Below the pieces are notes generated by a model. It made no database searches and was not told the DNA's origin. It saw only the letters and a list, made by a program, of their open reading frames with translations. DNA of 64,000 nucleotides, from assembly GCF_964204645.1 (NCBI RefSeq), contig NC_134033.1, forward strand, positions 14,702,655-14,766,654. Direction: 5' to 3'. The position numbers and the translations under genes were made by a program. Shown here piece by piece: positions 4,341 to 32,899 of this stretch. How positions within the stretch are numbered: position 1 is the stretch's first letter; each line of letters opens with the position of its first letter. The stretch comes from Tubulanus polymorphus. Its lineage: Eukaryota; Animalia; Nemertea.

Positions 4341-11976
<7,636 letters not shown>

Positions 11977-13860: not shown

Positions 13861-15200
13861 TTATAGTGGCGCCGCCACGCGCCGGAAGCAGGAAAGATAA
13901 AATTCCGTGTTCGAGTCCTTGGTATTATTAGCATTTGTCATCAACGTTATCTGAAATGTCAACAATCGATGATTCAATCGATCATACTCTAAAGACATTC
14001 CCTACGTCAGGTGTTCAAGGAAATTCCCTAAAATCTCATTGAAAATTCTACTTTCAAGTTTTCATCACCTACCATAGTCAGCAGTTTTATCAAATCGTGT
14101 ATCGCTTCAACGTCAATAATTATATCTTGAAAATAACAAAAACAAAGGAAATTATGTTAAGGCTGGAGTTGAAAAAGATTGTTTTTATATTTTGAATAGA
14201 AAAACGTAAGAACATTTTCACATATTCAAAGGCCTACCATTTTATTCAACGTCGCTCTGAGCAAGTTCATCCCTTTATTTTTGTTGTGGGGTTTGCTTCG
14301 TTTGACGGCCGCTTGTCTCGAATTTGACACGATCTTCAATAACGAACTCACTCTATGCGCCTTTTTAGCTTGTGATTTGGCGGCTAGTTGATTCTGTAGA
14401 TAGACGATAGAAGATTAACTTATATAGAGAAGAAATGATAGCTTTTGGACCTAGAGACATTATTCGTCAATGTATTCTTCAAAAGGAGTGCTCCTAGAAT
14501 ATGATCATGTATTCAGACATTATTCAGATAAATATATTATTCCAATCATTCCCAGATCCCTTTGAACCGGTACTTAGCCAACGATTTAGACTTACTGTCT
14601 TAGCGGCTGACGGCTTCTGTGACTTTACATTTTGACCAAGCGGCATTCCCTGTGATGGAAAATGACGATCGTAAAGCAAAAACAAAAACTATTTGTAATT
14701 CCCTGATGGCCTGAACTCTTTCAACGATGAATGAATGAATCACCATAATCGATGGGAAAAAATCGAGATTTTAAATGTGGGTTCTTTAAGTAAGAGTAGC
14801 TCCATTTCTATGGGAAGGATACGGTTGAATAATTATTACAGTTACAACGCATTATGTACATCTTCTACCTTGACATCTGCCGCAGTTGCTTTCAATTTTG
14901 CCTCAGGTACCATCTTCATCACCGGTTTGTTGACGGTTACCGATCTATCTCTTTGACCTTTTGGCAACGCAATCGGCATTTTCACTGTTTTGACGACGTC
15001 ATCCAGCTTCTTAGCTTTCTCAGCACCGGTGCTGTTACCAGCTGAGACGTCAGACGTAGCATTTCCAGCAGTGGCGTTTCCAACAGTAGTATTTTCAGCC
15101 GTGGTGTTTCCAGCAGTAGCACCTTCCGACGAAGCATTCTTAGGTTTGAGGCCTTCGAGCTTTTTTCCAAGTTCATCCCGTAGCTCTTGTGGGCAGGGCA
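13861..15200 (-). CDS. Giant protein terminal exons (NxT/S pentapeptide repeats, basic tail, stop)
   Basis: Exon 14869-15200 lies within ORF 14842..15357; then 14596-14649, 14238-14393 and 13861-13950, ending ...FRRVAAPL*. Confidence 0.72.
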
Positions 15201-18200
15201 CTGTTAAGCGAATTGTATAACAGAAATAAGCATTTTGCATCCAATGATTGCAGCAGATAAACATTACGAGCTTGTGTACGACGTGTGAAGTTCGTGTCAA
15301 ATCCACTTTGTTCAGATTGTGCAACTTGGGAGTAGATGCAGGAAAATGCAAACCCACTCCGTCTTAAATTGAGCGCAAATTGTTGAGTATGGTTACTTCC
15401 AGATGGAACACGCTATAGACATGCATGTTTTAGCAGCCGATCAACATGCACAGGGTGATTTTTTTTCTATTTTGATGCCATTATCTTTTATACACACGAT
15501 TAAGATCTCTAAAACCAAAAGATATAAGTTAATCTAGTTGTAGTGTAAACGATGATTTGAAAGAACTTACGTTTCATAGAATTTCCTTTGCCTGTGGGTA
15601 AATCGAAACAGAAAAGACAGTAACAGGTGAGACTGGTTTAAATAAGACAAAAAACGAAGACTCAATCGAGTGACCCAGTGCTATGCTTACTTATGCAGAG
15701 ATCTCCGTACAGATTCCAACCGCGTGGACACTTGAATTCTAAATAATATAGAAACATCAGAAATTATTATTCAAATGTCTTTGTTGTAGTTTAATCTTTC
15801 GGAACCATACGCACTGTAACATTTGCCGTCATGTCTAATCCATGAAACTTCACACGTCTTCTCTCCCTCCTTTATTGGTTGTTCTAAATGGAGAAAATTA
15901 CATTACGCTGCTACAAACAATTCTGACTAGTTTGCAAATCGGTACAAATTTTATGATATCAATTATGCCACAGACTATATGACGAGATGCATAAATAAAT
16001 GCACATTAAGGACATACCTTTGGCGCACATGCCGTTCATTGGTTTGTAGAGTGGATCACAGGAGTATACTATAAATGATAATACCAGTAATAAACATATG
16101 GATTATAATAACTACGTAATGCAAAATGCAAAAGTTGATAAATTAACGATTCATTTCAAGTAGTGCTTCCTTTATAAGCTTGCTATACTTAGATTACTTA
16201 ATCGACCTGGAAAAATAATCACCATCTGCTAACTCGGATATGGGTCTACGTAAGGTTGTGATGATTTTGATACTTACCAAACGTCGATTTACTCACGAAT
16301 CCGTACATCGCGTTCGCATTTGGCTTTTCTGAAATAGGAGAGTGTATATTCAACGACGATCCAATTTTGCACAATGACATCAGTGAAATATTTACCTGAA
16401 ATGGCATAATTAATTCTTTTCGAAACTTAATTGGTTAACAACGCAATGAAAGTGTTTTATAGGCCTAATAAACTACTAGGTGTTAACCCAATACCATGAA
16501 AAATACCGATATACAGACAATGACAAAATAAACGATAAATGATTAAGATCGAGAGAATAGATAAAATACCTGAACATTTATCGAATCCTACCATGATTGA
16601 TCCCAATGGACAGACACGTTCTGAAATTTAGATACAAAACAAACCATATAATTCGACATCGGTAATGCCACAATTAAAAGGGCCCTAAAATCTTGGCGTG
16701 AAAAAATAAGAAAAAAGCAAACCGCTGTCAATTCAGTTACGTGGTTTTGATAGGCGGAGGTGAATAAATAAATCATTCGATCACTCTGCTTTACCAAACA
16801 GAATTTTTGATTCCCATTCAGAAAAAGCCAGTAATTTTTTTCTCGTTAATTGCCTTTCCACCTGGTCTGGGCGTTATCCATGGCAAACGGAGGCCCCAAA
16901 TCATACTTACTTATGCATGCTCCATCGATAAGATGCCATTTAGGTGGACAATCCTTCCAGGAGCGCGGTAGAGAAAATCCTAAAATAAACAGTGATCAAA
17001 GAAGACATTTATATCTGATAAGCTTGATTGAATAGAAACAGGTTGGGTCGAAGATTCATTCACTTACGCGCTGCACAGAATCTCTTATTCAGTGGTTGAA
17101 ATCCATCAGGGCAATTAACTACAACAAACGAATGAGTATCAGTGTCAATATAAATTAAATATTCGGTAGTATCTCGAAATCTTCAAATTTCAAGCTTGTT
17201 TTACTAACGTTTTAATTTTGATGTACAATGTTCGTTTTCTGAAATGTTAAGTTCAAGTATTGAATGTGGGATGATAAAAACAGGTGAGCTGAAGTAACAG
17301 TAAAACCAGCAGGCCTGGGCGAACATACCTGTGCAATGTATACCAAGACAATCAAGGATCTTTCTCTGGTAGGTCGTAAATTTAGAATACGCCTTGTCCA
17401 TATCAGCCAGTTTACCCCCTTCCGATTTCAATTTTTCATATTCATCTTTAGCAGATGCATATTGTTTCATATTACTATCTGTCAGACACTTAAAAGGACT
17501 CGCTAGTGATGGGGGCTTAGGCTTCCCTGCCGATTTGGACTTTTCAGCAGCTTCTAATTTCTTTTCTTCCTTCTTTTCATCTTTGGCGGCTTCTTCGACT
17601 TTTTTCTTATCCTCGGTGACTTCTTTTTTAACTTCTTCAACTTTTTTCTCAGCCCCCGGCTTTCCTTCGGCCTTTTCTTTCTCAGCTTCCTTGAGTTTAT
17701 TTTCCTTTTCTTTGAGTTTCTCAGTTTTCTCCTCTACTTTCTTCTTGGCTTTTTCTGTTTTTTCCTTTTTCTCCTCGACTTCTTTTGCGGCTCCTTTTTT
17801 GGCTGGAGCTGGAGCACCGGTTTCCTCTTTCTTTTTGGCCTCGTCCAATTTCTTTTCTTCTTTCTTTTCATCTTTGACGGCTTCTTCGACTTTTTTCTTA
17901 TCCTCGGTGACTTCTTTTTTAACTTCTTCAACTTTTTTCTCAGCTCCCGGCTTTCCTTCGGCCTTTTCTTTCTCAGCTTCTTTGAGTTTATTTTCCTTTT
18001 CTTTGAGTTTCTCAGTTTTCTCCTCTACTTTCTTCTTGGCTTTTTCTGTTTTTTCCTTTTTCTCCTCGACTTCTTTTGCGGCTCCTTCTTTGGCTGGAGC
18101 TGGAGCGCCGGTTTCCTCTTTCTTTTTGGCCTCGTCCAATTTCTTTTCTTCCTTCTTCTCATCTTCGGCCGCTTCTTCGACTTTTTTCTTATCCTCGGTG

Positions 18201-21200
18201 ACTTCTTTTTTAACTTCTTCAACTTTTTTCTCAGCCCCAGGCTTTCCTTCGGCTTTTTCTTTCTCAGCTTCTTTGAGTTTATTTTCCTTTTCTTTGAGTT
18301 TCTCAGTTTTCTCCTCTACTTTCTTCTTGGCTTTTTCTGTTTTTTCCTTTTTCTCCTCGACTTCTTTTGCGGCTCCCTCTTTGATTGGAGCTGGAGCACC
18401 GGTTTCTTCTTTCTTTTTGGCCTCGTCCAATTTCTTTTCTTCCTTCTTTTCATCTTCGGCGGCTTCTTCGACTTTTTTCTTATCCTCGGTGACTTCTTTT
18501 TTAACTTCTTCAACTTTTTTCTCAGCCCCAGGCTTTCCTTCGGCTTTTTCTTTCTCAGCTTCTTTGAGTTTATTTTCCTTTTCTTTGAGTTTCTCAGTTT
18601 TCTCCTCTACTTTCTTCTTGGCTTTTTCTGTTTTTTCCTTTTTCTCCTCGACTTCTTTTGCGGCTCCCTCTTTGATTGGAGCTGGAGCACCGGTTTCTTC
18701 TTTCTTTTTGGCCTCGTCCAATTTCTTTTCTTCCTTCTTTTCATCTTTGACGGCTTCTTCGACTTTTTTCTTATCCTCGGTGACTTCTTTTTTAACTTCT
18801 TCAACTTTTTTCTCAGCCCCCGGCTTTCCTTCGGCTTTTTCTTTCTCAGCTTCTTTGAGTTTATTTTCCTTTTCTTTGAGTTTCTCAGTTTTCTCCTCTA
18901 CTTTCTTCTTGGCTTCTTCTGTTTTTTCCTTTTTCTCCTCGACTTCTTTCGCGGCTCCTTCTTTGGCTGGAGCTGGAGCACCAGTTTCTTCTTTCTTTTC
19001 ATCTTTGACGGCTTCTTCGACTTTTTTCTTATCCTCGGTGACTTCTTTTTTAACTTCTTCAACTTTTTTCTCAGCCCCCGGCTTTCCTTCGGCTTTTTCT
19101 TTCTCAGCTTCTTTGAGTTTATTTTCCTTTTCTTTGAGTTTCTCAGTTTTCTCCTCTACTTTCTTCTTGGCTTTTTCTGTTTTTTCCTTTTTCTCCTCGA
19201 CTTCTTTTGCGGCTCCTTCTTTGGCTGGAGCTGGAGTGCCGGTTTCCTCTTTCTTTTTGGCCTCGTCCAATTTCTTTTCTTCCTTCTTTTCATCTTTGAC
19301 GGCTTCTTCGACTTTTTTCTTATCCTCGGTGACTTCTTTTTTAACTTCTTCGACTTTTTTCTCAGCCCCCGGCTTTCCTTCGGCCTTTTCTTTCTCAGCT
19401 TCTTTGAGTTTATTTTCCTTTTCTTTGAGTTTCTCAGTTTTCTCCTCTACTTTCTTCTTGGCTTTTTCTGTTTTTTCCTTTTTCTCCTCGACTTCTTTTG
19501 CGGCTCCTTCTTTGGCTGGAGCTGGAGCGCCGGTTTCCTCTTTCTTTTTGGCCTCGTCCAATTTCTTTTCTTCCTTCTTCTCATCTTCGGCCGCTTCTTC
19601 GACTTTTTTCTTATCCTCGGTGACTTCTTTTTTAACTTCTTCAACTTTTTTCTCAGCCCCCGGCTTTCCTTCGGCCTTTTCTTTCTCAGCTTCCTTGAGT
19701 TTATTTTCCTTTTCTTTGAGTTTCTCAGTTTTCTCCTCTACTTTCTTCTTGGCTTTTTCTGTTTTTTCCTTTTTCTCCTCGACTTCTTTTGCTGCTCCTT
19801 CTTTGGCTGGAGCTGGAGCGCCGGTTTCCTCTTTCTTTTTGGCCTCGTCCAATTTCTTTTCTTCCTTCTTTTCATCTTTGACGGCTTCTTCGACTTTTTT
19901 CTTATCCTCGGTGACTTCTTTTTTAACTTCTTCAACTTTTTTCTCAGCCCCAGGCTTTCCTTCGGCCTTTTCTTTCTCAGCTTCTTTGAGTTTATTTTCC
20001 TTTTCTTTGAGTTTCTCAGTTTTCTCCTCTACTTTCTTCTTGGCTTCTTCTGTTTTTTCCTTTTTCCCCTCGACTTCTTTCGCGGCTCCTTCTTTGGCTG
20101 GAGCTGGAGCACCAGTTTCTTCTTTCTTTTCATCTTTGACGGCTTCTTCGACTTTTTTCTTATCCTCGGTGACTTCTTTTTTAACTTCTTCGACTTTTTT
20201 CTCAGCCCCCGGCTTTCCTTCGGCCTTTTCTTTCTCAGCTTCTTTGAGTTTATTTTCCTTTTCTTTGAGTTTCTCAGTTTTCTCCTCTACTTTCTTCTTG
20301 GCTTTTTCTGTTTTTTCCTTTTTCTCCTCGACTTCTTTTGCGGCTCCTTCTTTGGCTGGAGCTGGAGCGCCGGTTTCCTCTTTCTTTTTGGCCTCGTCCA
20401 ATTTCTTTTCTTCCTTCTTCTCATCTTCGGCCGCTTCTTCGACTTTTTTCTTATCCTCGGTGACTTCTTTTTTAACTTCTTCAACTTTTTTCTCAGCCCC
20501 CGGCTTTCCTTCGGCCTTTTCTTTCTCAGCTTCCTTGAGTTTATTTTCCTTTTCTTTGAGTTTCTCAGTTTTCTCCTCTACTTTCTTCTTGGCTTTTTCT
20601 GTTTTTTCCTTTTTCTCCTCGACTTCTTTTACTGCTCCTTCTTTGGCTGGAGCTGGAGCGCCGGTTTCCTCTTTCTTTTTGGCCTCGTCCAATTTCTTTT
20701 CTTCCTTCTTTTCATCTTTGACGGCTTCTTCGACTTTTTTCTTATCCTCGGTGACTTCTTTTTTAACTTCTTCAACTTTTTTCTCAGCCCCAGGCTTTCC
20801 TTCGGCTTTTTCTTTCTCAGCTTCTTTGAGTTTATTTTCCTTTTCTTTGAGTTTCTCAGTTTTCTCCTCTACTTTCTTCTTGGCATTTTCTGTTTTTTCC
20901 TTTTTCCCCTCGACTTCTTTCGCGGCTCCTTCTTTGGCTGGAGCTGGAGCACCAGTTTCTTCTTTCTTTTTGGCCTCGTCCAATTTCTTTTCTTCCTTCT
21001 TTTCATCTTTGACGGCTTCTTCGACTTTTTTCTTATCCTCGGTGACTTCTTTTTTAACTTCTTCAACTTTTTTCTCAGCCCCCGGCTTTCCTTCGGCTTT
21101 TTCTTTCTCAGCTTCTTTGAGTTTATTTTCCTTTTCTTTGAGTTTCTCAGTTTTCTCCTCTACTTTCTTCTTGGCTTCTTCTGTTTTTTCCTTTTTCTCC

Positions 21201-24200
21201 TCGACTTCTTTCGCGGCTCCTTCTTTGGCTGGAGCTGGAGCACCAGTTTCTTCTTTCTTTTCATCTTTGACGGCTTCTTCGACTTTTTTCTTATCCTCGG
21301 TGACTTCTTTTTTAACTTCTTCAACTTTTTTCTCAGCCCCCGGCTTTCCTTCGGCTTTTTCTTTCTCAGCTTCTTTGAGTTTATTTTCCTTTTCTTTGAG
21401 TTTCTCAGTTTTCTCCTCTACTTTCTTCTTGGCTTTTTCTGTTTTTTCCTTTTTCTCCTCGACTTCTTTTGCGGCTCCTTCTTTGGCTGGAGCTGGAGTG
21501 CCGGTTTCCTCTTTCTTTTTGGCCTCGTCCAATTTCTTTTCTTCCTTCTTTTCATCTTTGACGGCTTCTTCGACTTTTTTCTTATCCTCGGTGACTTCTT
21601 TTTTAACTTCTTCGACTTTTTTCTCAGCCCCCGGCTTTCCTTCGGCCTTTTCTTTCTCAGCTTCTTTGAGTTTATTTTCCTTTTCTTTGAGTTTCTCAGT
21701 TTTCTCCTCTACTTTCTTCTTGGCTTTTTCTGTTTTTTCCTTTTTCTCCTCGACTTCTTTTGCGGCTCCTTTTTTGGCTGGAGCTGGAGCACCGGTTTCC
21801 TCTTTCTTTTTGGCCTCGTCCAATTTCTTTTCTTCTTTCTTTTCATCTTTGACGGCTTCTTCGACTTTTTTCTTATCCTCGGTGACTTCTTTTTTAACTT
21901 CTTCAACTTTTTTCTCAGCTCCCGGCTTTCCTTCGGCCTTTTCTTTCTCAGCTTCTTTGAGTTTATTTTCCTTTTCTTTGAGTTTCTCAGTTTTCTCCTC
22001 TACTTTCTTCTTGGCTTTTTCTGTTTTTTCCTTTTTCTCCTCGACTTCTTTTGCGGCTCCTTCTTTGGCTGGAGCTGGAGCGCCGGTTTCCTCTTTCTTT
22101 TTGGCCTCGTCCAATTTCTTTTCTTCCTTCTTCTCATCTTCGGCCGCTTCTTCGACTTTTTTCTTATCCTCGGTGACTTCTTTTTTAACTTCTTCAACTT
22201 TTTTCTCAGCCCCAGGCTTTCCTTCGGCTTTTTCTTTCTCAGCTTCTTTGAGTTTATTTTCCTTTTCTTTGAGTTTCTCAGTTTTCTCCTCTACTTTCTT
22301 CTTGGCTTTTTCTGTTTTTTCCTTTTTCTCCTCGACTTCTTTATCGGCTCCCTCTTTGATTGGAGCTGGAGCACCGGTTTCTTCTTTCTTTTTGGCCTCG
22401 TCCAATTTCTTTTCTTCCTTCTTTTCATCTTCGGCGGCTTCTTCGACTTTTTTCTTATCCTCGGTGACTTCTTTTTTAACTTCTTCAACTTTTTTCTCAG
22501 CCCCAGGCTTTCCTTCGGCTTTTTCTTTCTCAGCTTCTTTGAGTTTATTTTCCTTTTCTTTGAGTTTCTCAGTTTTCTCCTCTACTTTCTTCTTGGCTTT
22601 TTCTGTTTTTTCCTTTTTCTCCTCGACTTCTTTTGCGGCTCCCTCTTTGATTGGAGCTGGAGCACCGGTTTCTTCTTTCTTTTTGGCCTCGTCCAATTTC
22701 TTTTCTTCCTTCTTTTCATCTTTGACGGCTTCTTCGACTTTTTTCTTATCCTCGGTGACTTCTTTTTTAACTTCTTCAACTTTTTTCTCAGCCCCCGGCT
22801 TTCCTTCGGCTTTTTCTTTATCAGCTTCTTTGAGTTTATTTTCCTTTTCTTTGAGTTTCTCAGTTTTCTCCTCTACTTTCTTCTTGGCTTTTTCTGTTTT
22901 TTCCTTTTTCTCCTCGACTTCTTTCGCGGCTCCTTCTTTGGCTGGAGCTGGAGCGCCGGTTTCCTCTTTCTTTGTGGCGCCGTCCAATTTCTTTTCTTCT
23001 TTCTTTTCATCTTTGACGGCTTCTTCGACTTTTTTCTTATCCTCGGTGACTTCTTTTTTAACTTCTTCAACTTTTTTCTCAGCCCCCGGCTTTCCTTCGG
23101 CTTTTTCTTTCTCAGCTTCCTTGAGTTTATTTTCCTTTTCTTTCAGTTTCTCAGTTTTCTCCTCTACTTTCTTCTTGGCCTTTTCTGTTTGTTCCTTTTT
23201 CTCCTCGACTTCTTTTGCGGCTCCTTCTTTGGCTGGAGCTGGAGCGCCGGTTTCCTCTTTCTTTTTGGCCTCGTCCAATTTCTTTTCTTCCTTCTTTTCA
23301 TCTTCGGCGGCTTCTTCGACTTTTTTCTTATCCTCGGTGACTTCTTTTTTAACTTCTTCAACTTTTTTCTCAGCCCCCGGCTTTCCTTCGGCTTTTTCTT
23401 TCTCAGCTTCTTTGAGTTTATTTTCCTTTTCTTTCAGTTTCTCAGTTTTCTCCTCTACTTTCTTCTTGGCATTTTCTGTTTTTTCCTTTTTCTCCTCGAC
23501 TTCTTTTGCGGCTCCCTCTTTGGCTGGAGCTGGGGCACCGCTTTCTTCTTTCTTTTTGGCGTCGTCCAATTTCTTTTCTTCCTTCTTTTCATCTTTTGCT
23601 GCATCCTTAACGTCCTCTTCAGCTTTTTTGATCTCTTGTTTAACCTCTTCAACCTTTTCTTTGGCCCCCGGCTTTCCTTCAGCGGTTGCATTCTTTGCTT
23701 CCTCAAGTTTTTCTTTCTCATCATTCAATTTTTCAGTTTTCTGTTCAACTTTTTCTTTTGCCTTCTCTTTTTCTTTCTCTTCTTTTTCAACCTCTTTTTT
23801 GGCTTCTTCTTTTGACGGTGTTGTTTTGCCAGTTTCATTTTTTTCCATTCCTTTTACTTCGATTATTTCTTTTTTCCCTTCTTTTTTTACCTCTTTCTCT
23901 TTCTTTTCAGCTGTCTTGATTTCTTCATTAGATTTTGCCTCCTCTTTTTTAAGATCCGCCATTTCTTGTTTTATTTCTTCACTCTGAACTTTGTCCGTCG
24001 TTTTATTCGATTGCTTTTCTTTAACAATATCCATCTTTATTTTAACTTCCTCTTTTTTAACTTTGGCATTTTCTGCTTCTGCTTCTGCCGCATCATCTGC
24101 CTTTTGAGCAGCGTCTTTAGCTGTTTCATCTGCTTTTTTCAATCCTTCCTTCACAGCAACCTTTAATACTTCTTTTTTTATTTCAAGTTTGTCTTCGGTT

Positions 24201-27200
24201 GCCTTATCACCAGTTGCCTTTGCAGTTTTGATGTCCTTTTCGATTGTTTTCAAATTATCTTTCTTTTCCTCTACCTTTTTATTTGTTTCCATGGACTTAT
24301 CTTTACTTTTCTTAGCTTCTTCTTTTGTGTTCTCCTTGTTATCTTTAGCCTCTACAATAGCTTTTTTGATAACTTTTTCAGCATCTTTTGCAGTCTTCTT
24401 AGCCTTTTCCTGCAGGTTAGCTGCTTTTTCCTCTTGCTTTTTGTCGCCTTTAGATGCTGCTCCCTTCATCATTTTATCGGCTTCAGTTTTCTCTTCTTCT
24501 GCCTTTTTCACAAGATCTTTGGCTTGTTCAGCATCTTTCTCGGCTGTGTCCTTTGTCTTTGTTCCTGTAATCTTTTTAGCAGCCTCATCAATATCTTTTT
24601 CTTCTGTTTTTACCACTGCAACCCCCTCATTTGCTTTTGCCACTGACTTTTCTAAGGTTTTAGTGAGTTGCTTCTCGGCGTTTTCGATGGCTGTTTTATC
24701 TCCTTTCTTTTCAACTTTGTTAACATTTGCTTCTGCTTTCTTTAATTCTTTCTTTTCTTCTTTTACTTGTTTTTCCTCTTTTTTCACTTTATTCATTTTC
24801 GTTTTTAACTAAAAAAAAATTCAAATATCAAGTAATGTTCAACCTAATCGTTTAAACGAAGGATCTCAAAATTTCAATAAATGTGTCAATGACAACTCCT
24901 ATTCTTTCTTACCCCCACCCAGCCCTTTCATTACACATTTCCGAAGTTGGAACTATCGATTTTTTAATGAGAGACCGCCGACAAACATAAGCCCTCACGA
25001 ATGCATTTTGATCACAATTTTGATTGAAAATTACATAGAAACATTATAAACAAATTGTGAAAGAGCTCTAATAGACTATAAACAAATGCGCCTCCACAAA
25101 TCTCTCGTAAAGGGAGCATTTGTTTTCAAACATCTTTTTAAATTAATGTAAGAATCATATTGCATCGATAGTTCGGCATTCGTGATCATTCCGCGGGAGG
25201 CCTTCGATCTCCCACCCACTTCCGCAAGTTATACTAATTGGAACAACTACCGAAATTTTGAGATGCTCCTTAATGAATGTATGCTGCGGGATTGCATAAC
25301 TCCTACCTTACTACTTTCCTTTTTGGCTTTTTTATCCTGCTTTCTGGCTTTCTTTATTTCCTTTTTCAATTTCTTAATTTTTCTCTTCTGACCTTTGCCT
25401 GGTTTTTCCTTCAGTTTCACAAGTGCTTCTTTTTTATTTTTTATTTCTTTTTTTAATTTGTCTTCGTTGCCCTTTGCTGTTTTCAGTGTCTTCTCGATGG
25501 CATCTTTACTGCCTTTCAAACTCTTTTCTGCTTGAACAACCGATTTTTCTGCACTTTCTTTTACTTTAGCCTTTGTTTCCGCTAACTCCTCTTTCATTTT
25601 GTCTGTCTTATTCTTACCACCTAAAATACAGATAATGTATATGATTATCTATTATCATCGTCGCAAAATGAAAATATGAATTGCTTACCTTTATTCTCTG
25701 CCTCGCTTATTTCTTTCTCGATTACTTTGGCTTTAGCCAAACTTTCCTCACTTTTAGTTATTTCTTTTTCGGTATCTTCAGCCTCTGTTTTGGAAGCTGC
25801 GGATTCCTCCTTCACGACCTCTGCCTTATCCTTTGCTAATTTCTCTTTCGCACTTTCTGCATCCTTTTCAGCTTCCTGAGCCTTATCTTCCTTTTTCTCG
25901 AGCTTTTCATCTAACTTCTCCACGGTTGTGTTGTCCCCCTTTTTTTCTGCTACAGCTTTCTCTTTCTCAAGAGATTTAACTTCGGCTTCATCTTTTTCCT
26001 TCTCAGCATTTGCCTTTTCACTCTTTTTATCTGCATCAGAAATCTTTGTTGCTTCGGCAAGCTTCTTAACATCTTTGTTAGCATCAACTGCTGTTTTGTC
26101 TGCTACATCAGCTACTTTTTTCATTTCGTCATTCATGACATTTTTAGCTTTATCAGCCTCGGATTTTGCTTTCTCTGCTGCTGCTTTCATTCCAGGATCT
26201 TTCGTTTCACTTGCCTTTTTCTCGAGGTCTGATGCCTCTGTTTCTTTCTTAACAAGTTTTTTGGCTTTTTCGTCCGTCTCCTTTTTCGTCTTTTCGAGGA
26301 CATCTTCCTCCTTTTTAGCTTTCTTTAGTGCCACTTCGGCTTCTTTAACAACTTTGCCCTTTTCTTTAGCTATGTCTTTTTCAGCTTTAACTTCTTCCTT
26401 CGCCCCTGGTTTCGTATCACCTTTTTCTTTAGCAGCTTCAGTGGTAGCCACTTTTGCGTCTGACTTGGCTTTATCCAATGTATCTTTTGCAACTTTAATC
26501 TGCTCCTTTACGGTATCGTTTGCTTTATCTAATCCCTTTTTGACCTCGTCTACGCCTTTCTTGATCGCCTCCGTTTCTTTCTCCTCTTTATCTTTCTTTT
26601 CTACCTCAAGCTTCACTACTTTAGCCGCATCACCTTTAGTTTTAGCTTCAACAATCTCTTTTTTTATGTTACTAACCTCAGTTGCAGCTAAATCTGCTTT
26701 GTTGGCTGATTTCTTAGCTGCCTCGGTATCCTTTTCTGTGTCTTTCTTATCTGTTTTTGCTCTGTTTTTATCTTCTTTTTCTTTCTTCTCAGGGTTAACA
26801 GTCTCTTTTGCGGTCTTTTCAACCTGAAAAAGTGTCTCAATGGATATAGCAAATACTCTCTTTAAAACGATAGAAGATAAAAGAATATCTTACCGACATG
26901 ACTGATTTAGCAACCGATTTCATTGAAGCGATTGCTTTTTCTTCTGTATCTTCTGAAGTGGTCTTCAGTTGTTTTCCTTCGGGTGATTGTTTACTCGCTG
27001 ATTTCAACTGTTTTTCAAGGGCATCGGCTTTTTTCAAAGCACTCTCAGAGACCTTCGCATTATTTGCAAGTTCTGCTTTCTTCTTTTCCGTAGCTTTTAC
27101 TTTATTCTCCCTGGCTTTAGAATCCTCAGCAAGTTTCTCTGCCTTTTCTTTTAGGTCTTTTGCTTTCACATCATCGCCATCTTTCTCTGCTTTTTTAGCA

Positions 27201-30200
27201 TCTTTTAAATTCTCATCAGCCTTCTTTTTGTCATCTTGTGCTTTTTTCTTTTCAATTTTTTCACTTTTATCTGCCACCTTTGCTGCTGACTTCACAGCAT
27301 CCAACTGATCTTGCAAAGCCTTACTTTTAGAATCTTTTTTCTCTTTCTCCGCCTGCTGCAGTTTGGTTTGTACTTCACCTACAGTCTTTTGATCACCTTT
27401 TCCTTGCTTGACTTTAATGGTTACTTCCTGTAATTTATCTTTCAGTTTATCAACCTTTTTAGCTGTCATCTTAACAGTTTCAGCACTTTGAGATGCCTTT
27501 TCCGCTTCAGATTTAGCTTTGGATGCCTCTTTTTTAACCTCTTGCTTCTCAACCTTTTCTGCTACTTTAGTTTTTTTGTTTGCCATTGTGTTCAACTCCT
27601 TTGAGCTTTCAGCAGCCTTTTCTGCTTTTACTTTCAGCAAAGAATCATTTGAAGCTTTTGCATTTTCTGCCAATTTCTTTGCCTTTTCCTCTTCGGTTTT
27701 TGCTTTTGATTTGAGATCGGTTGCCTCCTTCTTCAATTCAGTGGCTGGGACGTTTGTAAGGCTTGCGATGTTTGAAATTGCCGGTTTAATAGTTTTTTCC
27801 ATGTCTTTAGCGTAGACTTTAATGTCTTTCTTTATTTTTTCTCTCTCATTCTTCATACCGATTCGTAGCGACTTTTCTTTTTCTTTGTCACCTATTATGT
27901 AGATCACGCATTACATACAGCAACATTAAAAGTACTTGTTATTATACTTACTAAAATTGGCATGTAAGAAATGCTCAAATTAGCAGATTGATTACTCGAA
28001 ATATCAATTAAAACATATATATCGAATAAAACATACAAATATATAATCTGTGTACTAAAGATAATTGTAAAAGTCCTACAATAGAATTTCATATGATAAA
28101 ATGTTTTATTACATTACTATTAGCCAACAGCCAAAACGTTGTGGTTTCGTTGTAATAAATTTTATCAAATGAAATTCTATTGTGGGACTTCGATTAAATA
28201 TGAATAAAGACATGGTGGATACCTTTGGTTTCGGCATCTTTTGCAGCAATTTCGTCATCAGAGATTTTCTGTGCAAGTTTCTGCACCTCCTTTTCCTTTT
28301 TGGCTATTTCATCTAATTGCTTTTTCACATTCACCGATGATTTCTTCTTTTCTTCAGTTTCCTTTTTCATTTGTTCGGATTCAGTTTTATCTTTCTTACC
28401 AATTTCTTTTTGTGTTTCATCTTTGGATTTTGCAAGTTCCTATTAAAAATGTGGTTAAGATATATTATTCATACAATAAATGAGACAACCACAGTATTAT
28501 CTGTAACCATGTTTACCTTGGCTTCCAAATCCTTATTAGTTGCTTTTGTTTCTATCTTTGAAGTTTGAACTTCAAGAAGCTTGAGCAGATTTTCAAAAAC
28601 AAGTTTTGCCTGTAGCAAAGCCGCTTGATACACTGTAATTACATGGATTATCAATTTCCGTCGCCCATCCCGCTTTGCATCTAGTTTAGCTTTGGCTTGT
28701 GTGATGAGTTTCTGATCATTCTTTGCAGTTGCTTTTTTAAGTTCAGCCCGTGCATCAGCCACTTCTGTTTCCTCTTTCTCGTACTGAATCCAAGAAGTAC
28801 ATAATATACTAGTGTTGGGGTAGAAACATCGAAGCACGAACATTTTTAATGATAAAAATCTTATTCTACCTTATTTAAATCGTCTACGGTTTCCTTTGTT
28901 TTCTTCTCTACCTCCACAACATCGTGCTCAACCCTTTTAGCTTTATCTTCCTTCGCCTGCGTGTCTTCATCGTCGATTTCGTCTTTCTTTTCAGCTTTGT
29001 CATCTTCAAGTTTTTTTACCTCTCGCTTTAACTCTTTCGATTCTTTTTCGGTTTTTGAATCATTTGATTTACTGGATTTTTCTTCAACCTTGGCGAGTTC
29101 ATCTTGCTTTGACTCGATTTTATCATCAATCTTCTTTAGATCTTTCTTCTTTTTATCAACTTTCTCCTTACTTTTCTCTTCTGACTTTACGTCATCAGCT
29201 TTCTCTTTAACCTGTTTCTCCATTACAGTAGCCTTTTCAGCTGTGAGTTTTACTTTCTCCTTCTTGATATCAGCCTTTTTCTTTACTACCTCAGCTTCCT
29301 TTGCCTTAAGGAATATCAAATTGAAATGAGTACATTAAAAATGTCACAACTAAATAAAAAATTGTATTTTATGATCAGTATAACTAATAAATCACATCTT
29401 TACCTTGCCACTGCTCTTTAATTCAGCAGCTTTTTTCTGCAGTTCTAAAGCTTTTTCTTCATCCTTCTTCTCCTTGTCTTTTATATTTTCTACTTTCTTC
29501 TCTAACTTCTTAACTCCTTTCTCTTCTTCTTTAATGACCTTTGCCTTTGCTTTTTTCATATCGTCTTCTGTTTTTTCGACATCCTTAGTTTTTGATTTCA
29601 CTTCATTTTCCAATTTGTTTGCAATCGCTTTGTCTTCAGGTTTTCCTGTTTTCAGTGCTTTAGCTTTGGCATTGCTAGCTTTTACTTCAGTTTTTTCAAG
29701 ATTTTTCTTCTCCGATTCTTCCTTAGCCTTGCTTTCTTCCACCTTTTTCTCTGCTTGCTTCTGTTTTTCGACTGTTACCTTTTCGTCTGCCTTTTCTTTT
29801 TTGCTTGCTAGTTCCTCTTTCTTAGTTTCCAATTTTGATAGATTTTTCTTTATGTCATCAGCTTTTTTATTTGCATCTGGTGATCCTTTCGCGGCAGCTT
29901 TTTCTAAGTCAACTTCTTCCTTTTCAATTTTCTCTTCGGTTGCTTTTTCCTCCTTGTCAACCTTTTTCACTTCTTTTAGGTCCTTTGCTACTGTTTCAGA
30001 TGATTTCTTTTCTTCCTTTGCTTCTTTAACAAGCTTCTTTGAATCAGCCTTCATTTTATCAGCATCGGTCTTTGCCTTATCAGCTGCTGCTTGAGCCTGG
30101 GCAGCCTTTTCTTTGTTGCCTTTATTAGCTTCATCCTTTGCCTTTGCTTCCATTTTCAAAGCTTTTGTTTCTTCTGTCTTTGCTTTTTGTTCGTCTTTCT

Positions 30201-32899
30201 TTGCTTTTTCTTCAAGGTCTTTTGCACCCTTCTTTTCAGCTACTTCCTTAGTTTTTTCCGCCTTTTCAGATTCTTTTTCCTTCTCTTTTACCTCTCCTTT
30301 AACTTTTGTCACCTCCTTTTTGGCCTCTTCCACCTTTGCTTTATCTTCGGGTTTATTTGATTCTGCAGCCTTCGTTTCTGCTTCGGCAACTTTTTTAGTT
30401 GCATCTATTTTCTTCTTTTCAGCGGCCTTGAGATCATCATCAATTTTATCTGATTTATCTTCTTTTGACTCTTTCTTGCTTTCCTTTTCAGTTGCTACTT
30501 TATTTTTGTCCTCTTTGGTTTTTTCAATTTTCTTTTCAATTTTCACCTCAGATGCTTTAAGGGCTTCCACCTTCGTTTTATCCGCTGGACTTCCAGATGC
30601 GTTTGCCTTACTTTCAGCTTCTTCTATTTTCTTTTCAATGTCAACCTTCTTTTTTTCTTCGCCCTTAATTTTTTCATCAGCTTTCTTTGCTTGTTTTTCG
30701 ACATCTTTGTCACCTTTTTTCTCAACATTATTTTCAGCCTTCTTCAACTCTTTGACCTTTGCTTTGTCTTCCGGCTTTCCAGATTCCTTTGCTTTCTTCT
30801 CTGCCTCTTTAACCTTCTTCTCTGCCACCTTCTTCTCTTTTTTATCTTCCTCGATTTTCTTAGGTGCTTCCGCCGTTTCATTTTTCGTTCCATTTTCAGC
30901 TTTTTCTACTGCCTCATCTTTTTTCTTTTCAGCATCTTCTGCTTTTTTTTCTAATTTCTTTACTTCGTTCATGTCCTCTTGTTTCCCTGATTCCGAAGCT
31001 TTTTTCTCAGCCTTCTCTAGTTTTGAGGCAAGAACCTCGACCTTCTCTTCGGCCTTCTTCTCTGATTTAGCAGTCTCATTTCCAGCTTTTGTCTCATTTG
31101 TGGCAGATCCGCTGGTTTCAGCAGATGGTTTCGTCTCATTTCCAGCTTTCGACTCATTTTTAACAGACTCACTTGTTTCAGCAGAAGGTTTAGTCTCATT
31201 TCCAGTTTTCGTCTCATTTTTGGTAACCTCGCTTGATTCAGCAGTTGATTTTGTTTCATTTTCACCTTTTCCTTTCTCGCCTACTTTTGCTTTTTCCTTC
31301 ATCTCTGTCTTTTTAGATGCTTCGTCTAATTTACTGGTTGCTTTAACAACCTTTTCTCTTTCTTCTAGTGCTTTTTTCGTATTTTCCTTGATGTCTTTTT
31401 CTGCTTCGGTGGCTTTCTTTGTCATATCAGCTTTGCCCCCTTTTGATTTGATTAGATTTATAAGATCTGTAGTCAAATCAGCCAGGAACTGCATCTTCGT
31501 TGTAATCTTTGTTGTCATATCATCTAATTCCAATGCCTGTAACAATCATGTATGACGTACATTTTCGGAATCTTGTAGAACATAGTGTGTTGTAATTGTA
31601 TCAGGATTTTACCTTGTTATCGGCAGCAACTTTTGTTTCTGCAGCCACCCAGGTATGAGCCATATCCTCAGGCGATTTAGATTTTTCTGCTTTTGTTTTC
31701 GCCGCATTGTAGGCAACCTCTAATTGCTTGGATTGATCCCTGACACTAGCCACTTGTTTTGAGAGTTCTTTGACGATTCCAAGTAAAATACCAACCTTAA
31801 AGAATTTAGATTAACAATGACTTAGGCCTACTCATATCATACAACTTGTTAGAATGATCGACTCAAGTCTCAAACTAGTCTCTTAATGTATTTGAACTTA
31901 TCAGAATGATGTCACAATACACTTCCTGCCTTACGTTTTTCTTGGTTTGTTGAATTTCTTTCAATAGCTTATCTGGATCTTGTGTTTTGTAAATCTTCAT
32001 CTTTTCTTCTTTTTCCTTTTGTAATTTGACAACGTTCATCATCATCCAGCCTTCTCCCAAAACTGAAACGAACATTTCGATAATATTTCGACTTAATACA
32101 TATTTACTTTCTGGTAACATACACCGGAGAATATGAATTGTAATTGAGCACGAGTCATCAATTGAGGAACGTGTGCAGGAAAACTATTAACAATCAGAGA
32201 TGCACCATCTATAATGAAGCTACCTTTTGTACATTGTTTACGTGTCTGCGTGAGGCTTACGTCAGGAAATTTCACTCCAGTGTTGACTACCGTACCAGCA
32301 CTCTTAGTAGCATTAGTTGAAGCATCTACAAATGGCATATTCTTATGACTTAGTCAGATAAAACGTATTATGAAATAATTCACCATCAACATTATGATAT
32401 TGTAACAAATGCAACAAAGATCAGTAATATATTTGCAAATGGTTTGCATTTTTCATCGTCTTAAATCAATCGCGATACGTAAGAATCGTGTCTTTTTATT
32501 GATAATTACCGGTAATAACGACGCGTTCGCATTGTCCTTTAGAGTCCAGTTTATATCCGGTCGAACACTGTATAGCAGGCTTCATCATCGCAGCATCTGT
32601 ATATGAACATGAAGTATCCCGTCATAAAAAAATCATTCCGGTACAGTAATACAGTTACATTACATAACTTTGGTACAGTCATCTAATATGGCAATTTTGC
32701 TGTTCTTATGATCTAAAATTTGCTCTGCTTATTGAACTGACTAAAAACAACAATAGCGAATCGATTCTTTTCTTTAGGGTGATATTTTACTGTAGACCTG
32801 TAGAATTTGGCCCTGTACATCTATCATTTGTTTACCTTTTGCAGAGGAAACTGCAGCTGAGGAGATGACTAGCATCAGCACTAAGCCAAGCCTTGTCAT
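13861..32899 (-). CDS. Giant secreted Lys/Glu-rich repeat protein, ~4,829 aa, 24 coding exons, family not recognised
   Basis: Exons 5'->3': 32836-32899, 32510-32596, 32261-32325, 32123-32183, 31935-32062, 31613-31795, 29404-31536, 28870-29304, 28517-28783, 28223-28439, 26894-27891, 25689-26823, 25307-25620, 17329-24808, 17068-17118, 16911-16979, 16278-16328, 16018-16068, 15691-15738, 15571-15591, 14869-15200, 14596-14649, 14238-14393, 13861-13950. All introns are GT-AG with compatible phases; total 14,490 nt, open to TAA. Starts with signal peptide MTRLGLVLMLVISSAAVSSA; AATAAA lies ~100 nt after the stop. A few donors (28517, 31935, 14238) have alternatives. Confidence 0.85.
15571..17118 (-). 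CDS. Giant protein C-terminal microexon cluster (six 21-69 nt phase 1-1 exons; four encode two-Cys loops)
   Basis: Translations VNCPDGFQPLNKRFCAA / RFSLPRSWKDCPPKWHLIDGACI / KKPNANAMYGFVSKSTF / VYSCDPLYKPMNGMCAK / EFKCPRGWNLYGDLCI / SKGNSMK, each bounded by yag and gtaagt/gtaagc/gtatgt. Confidence 0.8.
17329..24808 (-). CDS. Giant protein exon 14, 7,480 nt, contains the 97-aa tandem array
   Basis: ORF 17204..24796; acceptor tttttttttag|TTA AAA ACG, donor TGC ACA G|gtatgt. Confidence 0.93.
17552..23539 (-). repeat. Coding tandem array: 21 units of 291 bp (three are 258 bp); a diverged unit precedes it to ~23830
   Basis: 291-bp periodicity is visible directly and in the spacing of the shadow ORFs (17734, 18025, 18316, 18607...). 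33-bp deletions near 18990, 20120 and 21250. Confidence 0.97.
25307..29304 (-). CDS. Giant protein exons 8-13 (KE/KA-rich helical region)
   Basis: ORFs 28861..29319, 28469..28843, 26837..27907, 25645..26616 and 25247..25597, plus exon 28223-28439, linked by short GT-AG introns in phase. Confidence 0.88.
29404..31536 (-). CDS. Giant protein exon 7 (711 codons, KE-rich, NET sequon repeats)
   Basis: ORF 29392..31545; ttacag|GCA and AAG|gtaaag, phase 0-0. Confidence 0.9.
31075..31265 (-). repeat. 60-bp (20-aa) coding repeat rich in N-E-T/S sequons, ~3 copies
   Basis: gtctcatttccag recurs at ~31074, 31134 and 31194; protein KNETKTGNETKPSAETSESVKNESKAGNETKPSAETSGSATNETKAGNET. Confidence 0.85.
32836..32899 (-). 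CDS. Giant protein signal-peptide exon (MTRLGLVLMLVISSAAVSSAK)
   Basis: ttttcttag| acceptor at 32913, ccaagATG, basic residue then hydrophobic core and small-residue cleavage site, AAAG|gtaaac donor. Confidence 0.8.

Follow-up and report, generated by a model that had tools for sequence, protein, structure and literature searches.

A tandem array of 97-residue repeats, built largely of lysine and glutamate, was found on the minus strand of a 64,000-nucleotide stretch of the genome of the nemertean Tubulanus polymorphus (assembly GCF_964204645.1, contig NC_134033.1, positions 14,702,655–14,766,654; this whole stretch is called the window below). On balance, each repeat unit is somewhat likely to form an antiparallel coiled-coil hairpin of two helices with a length of ~6 nm (~0.15 nm for each of 42 residues), and the hairpins would be strung on flexible hinges within a secreted, extensible polymer. 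The anatomy of the repeat, its periodicity, the fit of the helix register and the predicted fold are demonstrated in the following sections. Positions refer to the window.

In this favoured explanation, the two arms of a unit would each be stabilised in advance as a helix by a well-mixed Glu/Lys surface, and they would pair through a narrow seam in which heptad position a is Val or Leu and position d is mainly Ala. Such a seam would be Alacoil-like; an Alacoil is a tight antiparallel pair of helices with small core residues. Lys would flank the seam in arm 1, and Asp or Glu would occupy weak core positions in arm 2. An E-G-K-P-G loop would close the hairpin, and the 10-aa segment T-G-A-P-A-P-A-K-E-G would serve as a flexible hinge to the next unit. 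Twenty-two such hairpins would lie in the middle of a secreted chain of ~4,800 aa, the remainder of which would be amphipathic-helical too and the ends of which would bear small disulfide loops and blocks of N-glycosylation sequons.

Organization of the Repeat Array

The array covered positions 17531–23542 of the minus strand (residues 419–2422 of its exon; 2004 aa) and comprised 21 near-identical units, of which 18 had 97 aa and three had 86 aa. Tandem Repeats Finder gave a period of 291 nt with 96–97% matches, and splitting of the translation yielded 22 GKPG turns and 21 [ST]G[AT]PAP linkers at a spacing of 97 aa, with three spacings of 86 aa. Both analyses confirmed the repeat reported in a preliminary description of this DNA and its place in the window, with the correction that it is read on the minus strand. 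The observation of the repeat is well supported overall. The mean pairwise nucleotide identity among the 21 units was 96%.

A full unit of 97 aa was made up of a 10-aa linker (TGAPAPAKEG), a 42-aa arm 1, the GKPG turn and a 41-aa arm 2, and the plan of two helix-forming segments separated by GKPG and followed by a linker was thus borne out. In unit 5, on the minus strand, the linker (TGAPAPIKEG) was located at 22349–22378, arm 1 (42 aa, net charge +2) at 22223–22348, the turn at 22211–22222 and arm 2 (41 aa, net −3 in the AAED form of the repeat or −1 in the AVKD form) at 22088–22210. Each arm formed one helix in the structural model described below, at construct residues 13–56 and 62–103, respectively, and the turn formed a loop at residues 57–61, where the predicted local distance difference test score (pLDDT) was 82–91.

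The array was preceded by a degenerate unit 0 (23543–23833, minus strand), which was 61% identical to the array units. It kept the GKPG turn and had TGKTTPSKEE in place of the PAPA linker, and GKPG was invariant at the protein level in all 22 units. Unit 8 (21248–21505), unit 12 (20117–20374) and unit 16 (18986–19243), all on the minus strand, were the 86-aa forms; each lacked the final 11 residues of arm 2. The earlier count of 21 units held for the near-identical ones, although neither the degenerate twenty-second unit nor the three shortened units had been mentioned in it. The 86-aa units recurred at four-unit intervals, units 4–7 were nearly equal to units 18–21, and units 8–9 were identical to units 16–17. 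This pattern indicated that the array grew through multi-unit block duplications. Long near-identical blocks of this kind are the type of sequence in which assemblies can miscount copies.

Composition and Charge

The AAED variant of the unit contained 32 K, 29 E and 3 D, so that 66% of its residues were charged and its net charge was 0. These counts agreed exactly with those in the preliminary description, as did the complete lack of Arg, aromatic residues and Cys, which extended across the array. A furin-type polyprotein with R-x-K/R-R sites, such as the nematode polyprotein allergens, was rejected on the zero Arg in the 2004-aa array. The AAED form was the minority, with seven of the 21 units, and the AVKD form was the commonest, with 13. 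In the AVKD form arm 2 carried −1 and the whole unit +2. The idea of a charge-neutral unit was therefore correct for only seven of the 21 units. Arm 1 had a net charge of +2, and the previously estimated +3 was reached only if the Lys of the turn was counted; the −3 proposed for arm 2 was found in the AAED form. The whole array carried +22 over 2004 aa, which averaged ~+1 per unit. The arms were 71–76% charged, with the charges well mixed (kappa about 0.02–0.04), and V, L and I made up only about 10% of the repeat residues.

Heptad Seam, Register and Conservation

The hydrophobic moment of both arms peaked at 102.9°, the heptad angle, with z = 3.8–4.1, a value reached by at most 1/3000 shuffles per arm. 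The periodicity did not lie at 98.2°, the angle of 11-residue repeats of the apolipoprotein or LEA type. The a positions were V, T, V, L, L, K in arm 1 and V, V, V, E, L, E in arm 2, and the d positions were A, K, A, K, K, A and A, V, D, A, E, A, respectively. The 7-residue spacing described earlier was exact, with V5, T12, V19, L26 and L33 in arm 1 and V5, V12, V19 and L33 in arm 2. Beta-branched residues at a together with Ala at d are a signature of coiled coils. Eight of the 12 a/d positions in each arm were apolar or small, and the seam was thus thin.

When 16 antiparallel registers (i+j = 34 to 49) were scanned, only at i+j = 41 were there 12 a/d layers of which none was polar/polar or like-charge. 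It was also the register imposed by a 5–6-residue loop at GKPG, and a-d' packing was satisfied in it. All core Lys residues of arm 1 stood opposite Val, Leu or Ala of arm 2, and all core Asp and Glu residues of arm 2 stood opposite Leu, Ala or Thr of arm 1. A parallel in-register homodimer was rejected, since it would place K against K in four layers of arm 1 and D against D or E against E in four layers of arm 2.

None of the 24 a/d positions was among the nine arm positions that varied between the 21 units (P = 0.038, hypergeometric). The degenerate unit 0 retained 14/14 apolar a/d residues, one of them as a change of V to I, and was altered at 6/10 charged or polar a/d residues and at many surface charges. 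The deletion in the 86-aa units was situated at the open end of the GKPG-closed hairpin, the register of which was unaffected by it; a hairpin closed through the linker would be moved by four heptad positions. Heptad seam, register, conservation and the 86-aa deletion are four independent lines within the sequence that favour pairing of the two arms. The a/d seam, matched arm lengths, short loop and compatible a-d' register of an Alacoil-like hairpin were all found, the three-dimensional hairpin by prediction only.

Predicted Structure

AlphaFold modelling, which had been proposed as a check, was applied to constructs of one and of three units and gave a confident hairpin for the single unit. 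For one unit with short flanks, AlphaFold2 returned helices at residues 13–56 and 62–103 joined by an E-GKPG loop (pLDDT 85.8; predicted TM score, pTM, 0.67), and the pLDDT exceeded 90 at 72/107 residues. Three units gave six helices (pLDDT 82.5, pTM 0.43). The pLDDT of this larger model was 56–58 only at the PAPA linkers and 82–85 across the GKPG turns, which is the pattern expected of independent hairpins on flexible hinges in such a model.

A Foldseek search with the one-unit model retrieved the LSD1 tower, MacA, CT398, CdsO and SipB (TM 0.67–0.77, rmsd 1.6–2.7 Å). VIA-align retrieved a lengthened ROP (Z 11.7, rmsd 2.0 Å over 84 residues) and, further, HlyD, SMC arms, prefoldin and colicin receptor-binding hairpins (Z 10–11.7). 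The three-unit model matched no compact fold among solved structures (TM <= 0.24), and the shape search of the ESM Atlas yielded only generic hairpins within unrelated proteins. At the level of these models, the matches establish topology and not kinship.

Several observations weighed against a stable intramolecular hairpin. Only 4/12 layers were apolar on both sides, and the other eight paired an apolar residue with Lys, Glu or Asp; the buried surface was small, and the stability of the hairpin may be marginal. The interhelical e/g pairs comprised six attractive and three repulsive ones, a balance not distinguished from that of shuffled surfaces (P = 0.22). Neighbouring units or separate chains could form the i+j = 41 interface just as well, and no homologues that could show covariation were found in the searches listed below. 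AlphaFold2 was run on single sequences, without an alignment or a scrambled control, and this program is prone to turn any pair of loop-linked amphipathic helices back on each other. The fold matches were generic, with Foldseek E-values all >0.3, and Z values of ~11 are common for helical models. The hairpin that the preliminary description had inferred was supported by computation in its two helices, GKPG turn, Pro/Ala hinge and antiparallel preference, although its core proved thin and the hairpin may be marginal. The structure is plausible on the models.

Alternative Explanations

Single alpha-helix (SAH) domains, such as the ER/K helices, lack a hydrophobic seam by definition (PMC5347031), and hydrophobic networks are penalised in SAH scoring (PMC5812594). 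Strings of independent E/K single helices, that is, 44 stiff 6-nm rods with GKPG and PAPA as kinks and no contact between the arms, are a minor though serious possibility. The arms are dominated by E and K as in SAH domains but without Arg, they are 71–76% charged with the charges very well mixed, E, K and A all favour helix, and the core is thin, with 4/12 layers fully apolar. The charge pattern was divided on this point. Opposite charges at i,i+3 were enriched in arm 2 only (z 2.8–3.0), which would suit a single helix, and those at i,i+4 were at the level of shuffles (z 0.06 to 0.5), which would not; arm 1 alternated E and K, and arm 2 was EEKK-like, with only i+2 and i+3 enriched. The density of opposite-charge pairs at i+3/i+4 was 0.36–0.45 of the EEEEKKK maximum (0.83 for AEEEKKK), near the Waggawagga cut-offs of 0.25–0.35 (PMC5812594), but this density is an unweighted surrogate rather than the real Waggawagga score, and the two scales are not identical. 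Against unpaired rods stood the significant heptad seam in both arms (z 3.8–4.1), with beta-branched Val at a and one V5-V8-V12 hydrophobic network in arm 2, the coincidence of the conserved residues with the seam residues, and the placing of the arms together by AlphaFold2 (pTM 0.67). Designed polypeptides allowed a further comparison. The AEEEKKK polypeptide is a monomeric single helix, >90% helical, which is stable between pH 2 and pH 10 and at 4 M NaCl still has 60% of its helicity. The polypeptide AEEAKKA, with an alanine-only seam, dimerises and remains helical to 85°C, and its authors suspect an Alacoil-type antiparallel pair (PMC5347031). The seam of the arms was stronger than that of AEEAKKA at a (Val/Leu) and comparable at d (Ala). 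On this comparison, pairing of the arms is physically reasonable. The lone helix without arm–arm contact, which had been set against the hairpin from the beginning, was weakened by the seam and by the unenriched i,i+4 pairs, in sequence and computation only.

The same seam could be used in another way. Arm 1 might pair with arm 2 across the PAPA linker or between chains, and the product would then be a reversible gel or a multi-chain rope stapled by terminal Cys; we regard this as rather improbable. The i+j = 41 interface is symmetric and presents the same layers whichever loop closes it, the arm charges are complementary (+2 against −1 or −3), Cys is confined to the ends of the gene, a thin core would favour exchange, and AEEAKKA dimerises intermolecularly (PMC5347031). 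However, entropy favours the short GKPG loop over an 11-residue Pro-rich loop, AlphaFold2 was confident at GKPG and unsure at PAPA, and in the 86-aa units a linker-closed hairpin would fall out of heptad register. Parallel in-register homo-oligomers would stack like charges in eight core layers per unit. Two further explanations were considered. The helices might be induced by a ligand or surface (lipid, polyanionic glycan, mineral or drying), as in exchangeable apolipoproteins or group 3 LEA proteins, which is very unlikely here. The tandem amphipathic helices are secreted and punctuated by proline, the Lys of arm 1 is clustered at the seam-flanking positions with Glu on the far face, and the rest of the protein has an amphipathic periodicity of 3.6–3.67 residues, yet the apolar face of the repeat is one to two residues wide with ~10% V/L/I, far too little for lipid, its periodicity is 7/2 and not 11/3, and no Pfam match to apolipoprotein or LEA families was obtained. 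Lipid-binding apolipoprotein-like helices were accordingly rejected on the narrowness of the apolar face. An intrinsically disordered strong polyampholyte, a random coil without persistent helix, seems the most improbable of these explanations and hardly credible. It would agree with the 66% of charged residues, the near-zero net charge, the well-mixed charges and the lack of aromatics, but the E/K/A/L composition has a high helix propensity, the pLDDT was >90 at 72/107 residues, a significant and conserved heptad seam would make no sense in a coil, and comparable E/K polypeptides are >90% helical (PMC5347031).

Gene Organization

The window had a eukaryotic look, with only 15 open reading frames (ORFs) of at least 150 aa. 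The repeat-bearing ORF lay at 17204–24796 on the minus strand (2,530 codons), and together with the splice junctions it delimited a giant central exon of a multi-exon gene (17329–24808, minus strand; ~2,493 codons, 7.5 kb). Besides unit 0 and the array of 21 units, this exon carried a non-repeat head rich in K/E/A and a Cys-bearing tail of 76 aa. The tail (17327–17554, minus strand), which on translation read EAAEKSKSAGKPKPPSLASPFKC...LDCLGIHCTG, had three Cys. The acceptor of the giant exon was a T-tract followed by AG, ending at 24809; the exon upstream of it ended with AAG/GTAGGA at 25307 and joined it in frame. The donor CAG/GTATGT after 17329 was in phase 1, as was an alternative donor after 17344. 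Additional K/E/A-rich exons were found upstream, as far as ~31.8 kb.

The first coding exon (32836–32899, minus strand) encoded the signal-peptide-like MTRLGLVLMLVISSAAVSSAK and ended in a phase-1 donor (G/GTAAAC). It joined in phase to a phase-1 microexon (~32510–32602, minus strand) for a loop of the form C-x-x-G-Y-x(7)-C. Downstream of the giant exon, at 14.8–17.2 kb, there were similar microexons with Cys loops and a last exon rich in sequons. The exons were analysed individually and, read one by one, indicated a very large protein of about 4,800 aa, which is predicted to be secreted because the signal-peptide exon is spliced in phase to the following one.

The Cys-loop microexons at 15600–17200 and ~32510–32602 (both minus strand) were in phase 1, and every one of them encoded a single short loop of the pattern C-(P)-x-(G)-[WFY]-x(5-7)-C. 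Each end of the gene has such microexons, and their loops are similar to the final hairpin of an EGF-like module or the opening hairpin of a C-type lectin domain. A block rich in N-glycosylation sequons, with GNETKPSAETSE repeats, was located near the N-terminus (~31100–31250, minus strand), and the last exon (14842–15357, minus strand) was rich in sequons as well, with NTT/NAT/NST repeats. The 6-kb array contained no N-glycosylation sequon.

Coding on the minus strand was backed by the third-position bias of the variable nucleotide columns (9/9/24 by codon position) and by canonical in-frame GT-AG junctions. A Ser/Phe/Leu-rich ORF of 2,197 aa also ran antisense to the array (17394–23987, plus strand). 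Plus-strand coding was rejected, as splice sites, signal peptide and Cys-loop exons were all on the minus strand; the ORF was a codon-composition shadow of the repeat, and its third codon positions fell on those of the real frame. The coding strand of the array was 79% purine over 6 kb. Elsewhere in the window, a paired-class homeobox gene was found at 8.8–12 kb, with exons at 8794–9768 and 11398–11976 (both plus strand) and Pfam matches to the start of the homeodomain (E = 7e-7) and to the C-terminal OAR motif (E = 3e-7); such a gene is a good sign of animal DNA.

Relatives within and beyond the Genome

Pfam searches with the repeat, its flanks and the other exons gave nothing above noise, and four units had no match even at E <= 1. 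A word-index protein search with exon residues 1–620 and the C-terminal residues 2412–2490 found no match among proteins of 1,391–4,427 aa. An exhaustive phmmer search with two units against 1.84 billion protein representatives returned 0 matches at E <= 0.001, the feature search of the ESM Atlas gave no usable match, and the only sequence match in the PDB was SipB, which was not significant (E = 0.038). The fold is of a known kind, and a tandem, near-neutral, secreted array of such hairpins was not assignable to a named family.

In a search of the whole genome of the animal (268 Mb, 77 contigs), the unit was confined to the present gene, save for one frameshifted single-unit fragment 1.2 Mb away. 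This fragment (L011 4400–5100, plus strand; C9:15922400–15923100) covered approximately one unit at 72% identity, was frameshifted with stops, and had GKQR in place of GKPG. Judged by its sequence, it is probably a dead copy. Beside it (L011 1284–3287, minus strand) was a glycine-rich ORF of 667 aa with GGAYGGNAGGGG-type repeats, accompanied by long shadow ORFs in other frames and on the opposite strand; this ORF may belong to a further gene for a structural protein.

Outside the array, the repeat-bearing protein was also amphipathic-helical: the moment peaked at 98–108° in 36–100% of its windows, compared with ~9% for shuffles. The upstream exons at 29392–31545 and 31604–31810 (minus strand) contained a related turn, [ST]-G-K-P-E-D, as well as SGSPAD, SNKPED and KSPED. 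The [ST]-G-K-P-E-D turns were flanked by AEKKAKE...KAKVKELKKAE and spaced irregularly, at 26–150 aa. Since the remainder of the protein is amphipathic-helical and reuses a related turn, this suggests that the 97-aa unit is a recently amplified and regularised descendant of a motif that pervades the gene.

Comparison with Known Systems

Known antiparallel hairpins (ROP, the LSD1 tower, MacA/HlyD/AcrA, prefoldin, CdsO/YscO and SipB/IpaB) share with the predicted unit two helices of ~40 residues and a short turn. None had significant sequence similarity to it, and among solved chains a sequence signal came from SipB alone (E = 0.038). These hairpins occur singly within larger proteins or oligomerise and have richer cores, whereas the repeat is present in 22 near-identical tandem copies on Pro/Ala hinges, is secreted and is two thirds charged. 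Alacoils resemble the unit in that a small residue, Ala, dominates one core position.

SAH domains (myosin VI/X, caldesmon, INCENP, drebrin and the AEEEKKK designs) are similarly Glu/Lys-rich, soluble, long helices without aromatics, and the arms of the repeat, like them, are likely helical even when unpacked. SAH domains are low-force springs (PMC4183817). The repeat differs from them in its heptad seam, unenriched i,i+4 pairs, fixed helices of 41–42 aa with G-K-P-G, and lack of Arg. Its protein is also predicted to be extracellular, unlike the known SAH proteins, which are mostly cytoskeletal or nuclear (PMC5812594).

The spectrin-family repeats (spectrin, alpha-actinin and dystrophin) are tandem helical units of ~100 aa in an elastic chain as well. 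These repeats are intracellular, each unit bundles three helices around a rich core, and the junctions between units are helix-continuous; the present units are modelled with two helices each and flexible hinges, and four of them gave no match to the spectrin repeat family PF00435 at E <= 1. Honeybee and other aculeate silks, which have alanine-rich cores, are likewise extracellular materials made of coiled coils that are weakly hydrophobic and have small residues in the core (PMC12284834). They differ in their ~30-kDa chains, parallel heterotetramer and far fewer charges, and show no sequence relation and no known tandem hairpin architecture. Artificial multiblocks of helix, linker and helix form reversible gels. 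Like the repeat, exchangeable apolipoproteins such as apoA-I are secreted and consist of amphipathic helices in tandem, punctuated by proline and with Lys close to the border between the polar and apolar faces; they are distinguished from it by a periodicity of 11/22 residues and a broad aromatic/Leu lipid face, in contrast to its 7-residue periodicity and narrow Val/Ala stripe.

Proposed Mechanics and Material Role

Hairpin stability, mechanics and biological role are what we infer from the features above. The N- and C-termini would leave each hairpin at one tip, and the array would therefore form a comb of 22 rods on a thread of 10-residue hinges. Tension along the thread would act on a thin core in the unzipping geometry, and low forces would suffice to open a hairpin, in a process close to equilibrium. 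The two rods so formed would probably remain helical through their E/K surfaces. Because both ends leave from the same tip, unzipping at low force is to be expected instead of the high-force sawtooth. By arithmetic, the array would lengthen from ~0.1 µm folded to ~0.35 µm as open rods and to ~0.75 µm when fully unfolded. After opening, the helices would melt at roughly constant force, as single alpha-helices do (PMC4183817).

The outcome would be a soft, highly hydrated, near-neutral and extensible polymer for extracellular secretion or matrix. Both ends carry Cys-loop modules and blocks rich in sequons, and with these the most economical role for the protein would be that of an extensible, hydrated constituent of the extracellular matrix or of a secretion. 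The surface of the array was zwitterionic, and the Thr of the linker, in its T-G-A-P context, may presumably favour O-glycosylation. The antifouling and extensible properties proposed in the preliminary description are plausible as conjectures. Its suggestion of a salt- or pH-responsive string is doubtful: strong switching within the physiological range would be unlikely in view of the tolerance of AEEEKKK, a designed E/K helix whose fold persists over pH 2–10 and whose helicity at 4 M NaCl is still 60% of the original (PMC5347031).

A more specific picture can be drawn, which we offer as a speculation with a small chance of being right: a "jack-knife" extracellular polymer, in which 22 near-neutral, weakly zipped Alacoil-type hairpins would open reversibly at piconewton tension to SAH-like rods, or swap arms between chains. 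It would make a self-healing, strongly hydrated, low-fouling gel or thread and represent an undescribed class of animal material protein, for which no relative was detected beyond this lineage.

Significance

If the hairpin fails to form, the array would be one more lineage-specific, Lys/Glu-rich, low-complexity repeat. If it does form, the array would be a genetically encoded, nearly monodisperse multiblock polymer with a zwitterionic surface and defined hinges. Its folding unit, two charged helices and a Val/Ala stripe, would be close to the simplest protein domain conceivable, and it would provide a clean natural model of the boundary between single alpha-helix and coiled coil, which prediction tools still confuse, and could serve as a template for protein materials that are soft, extensible and non-fouling. 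The array also shows that regular architectures unflagged by family databases can lie hidden in giant orphan secreted proteins of little-studied animals.

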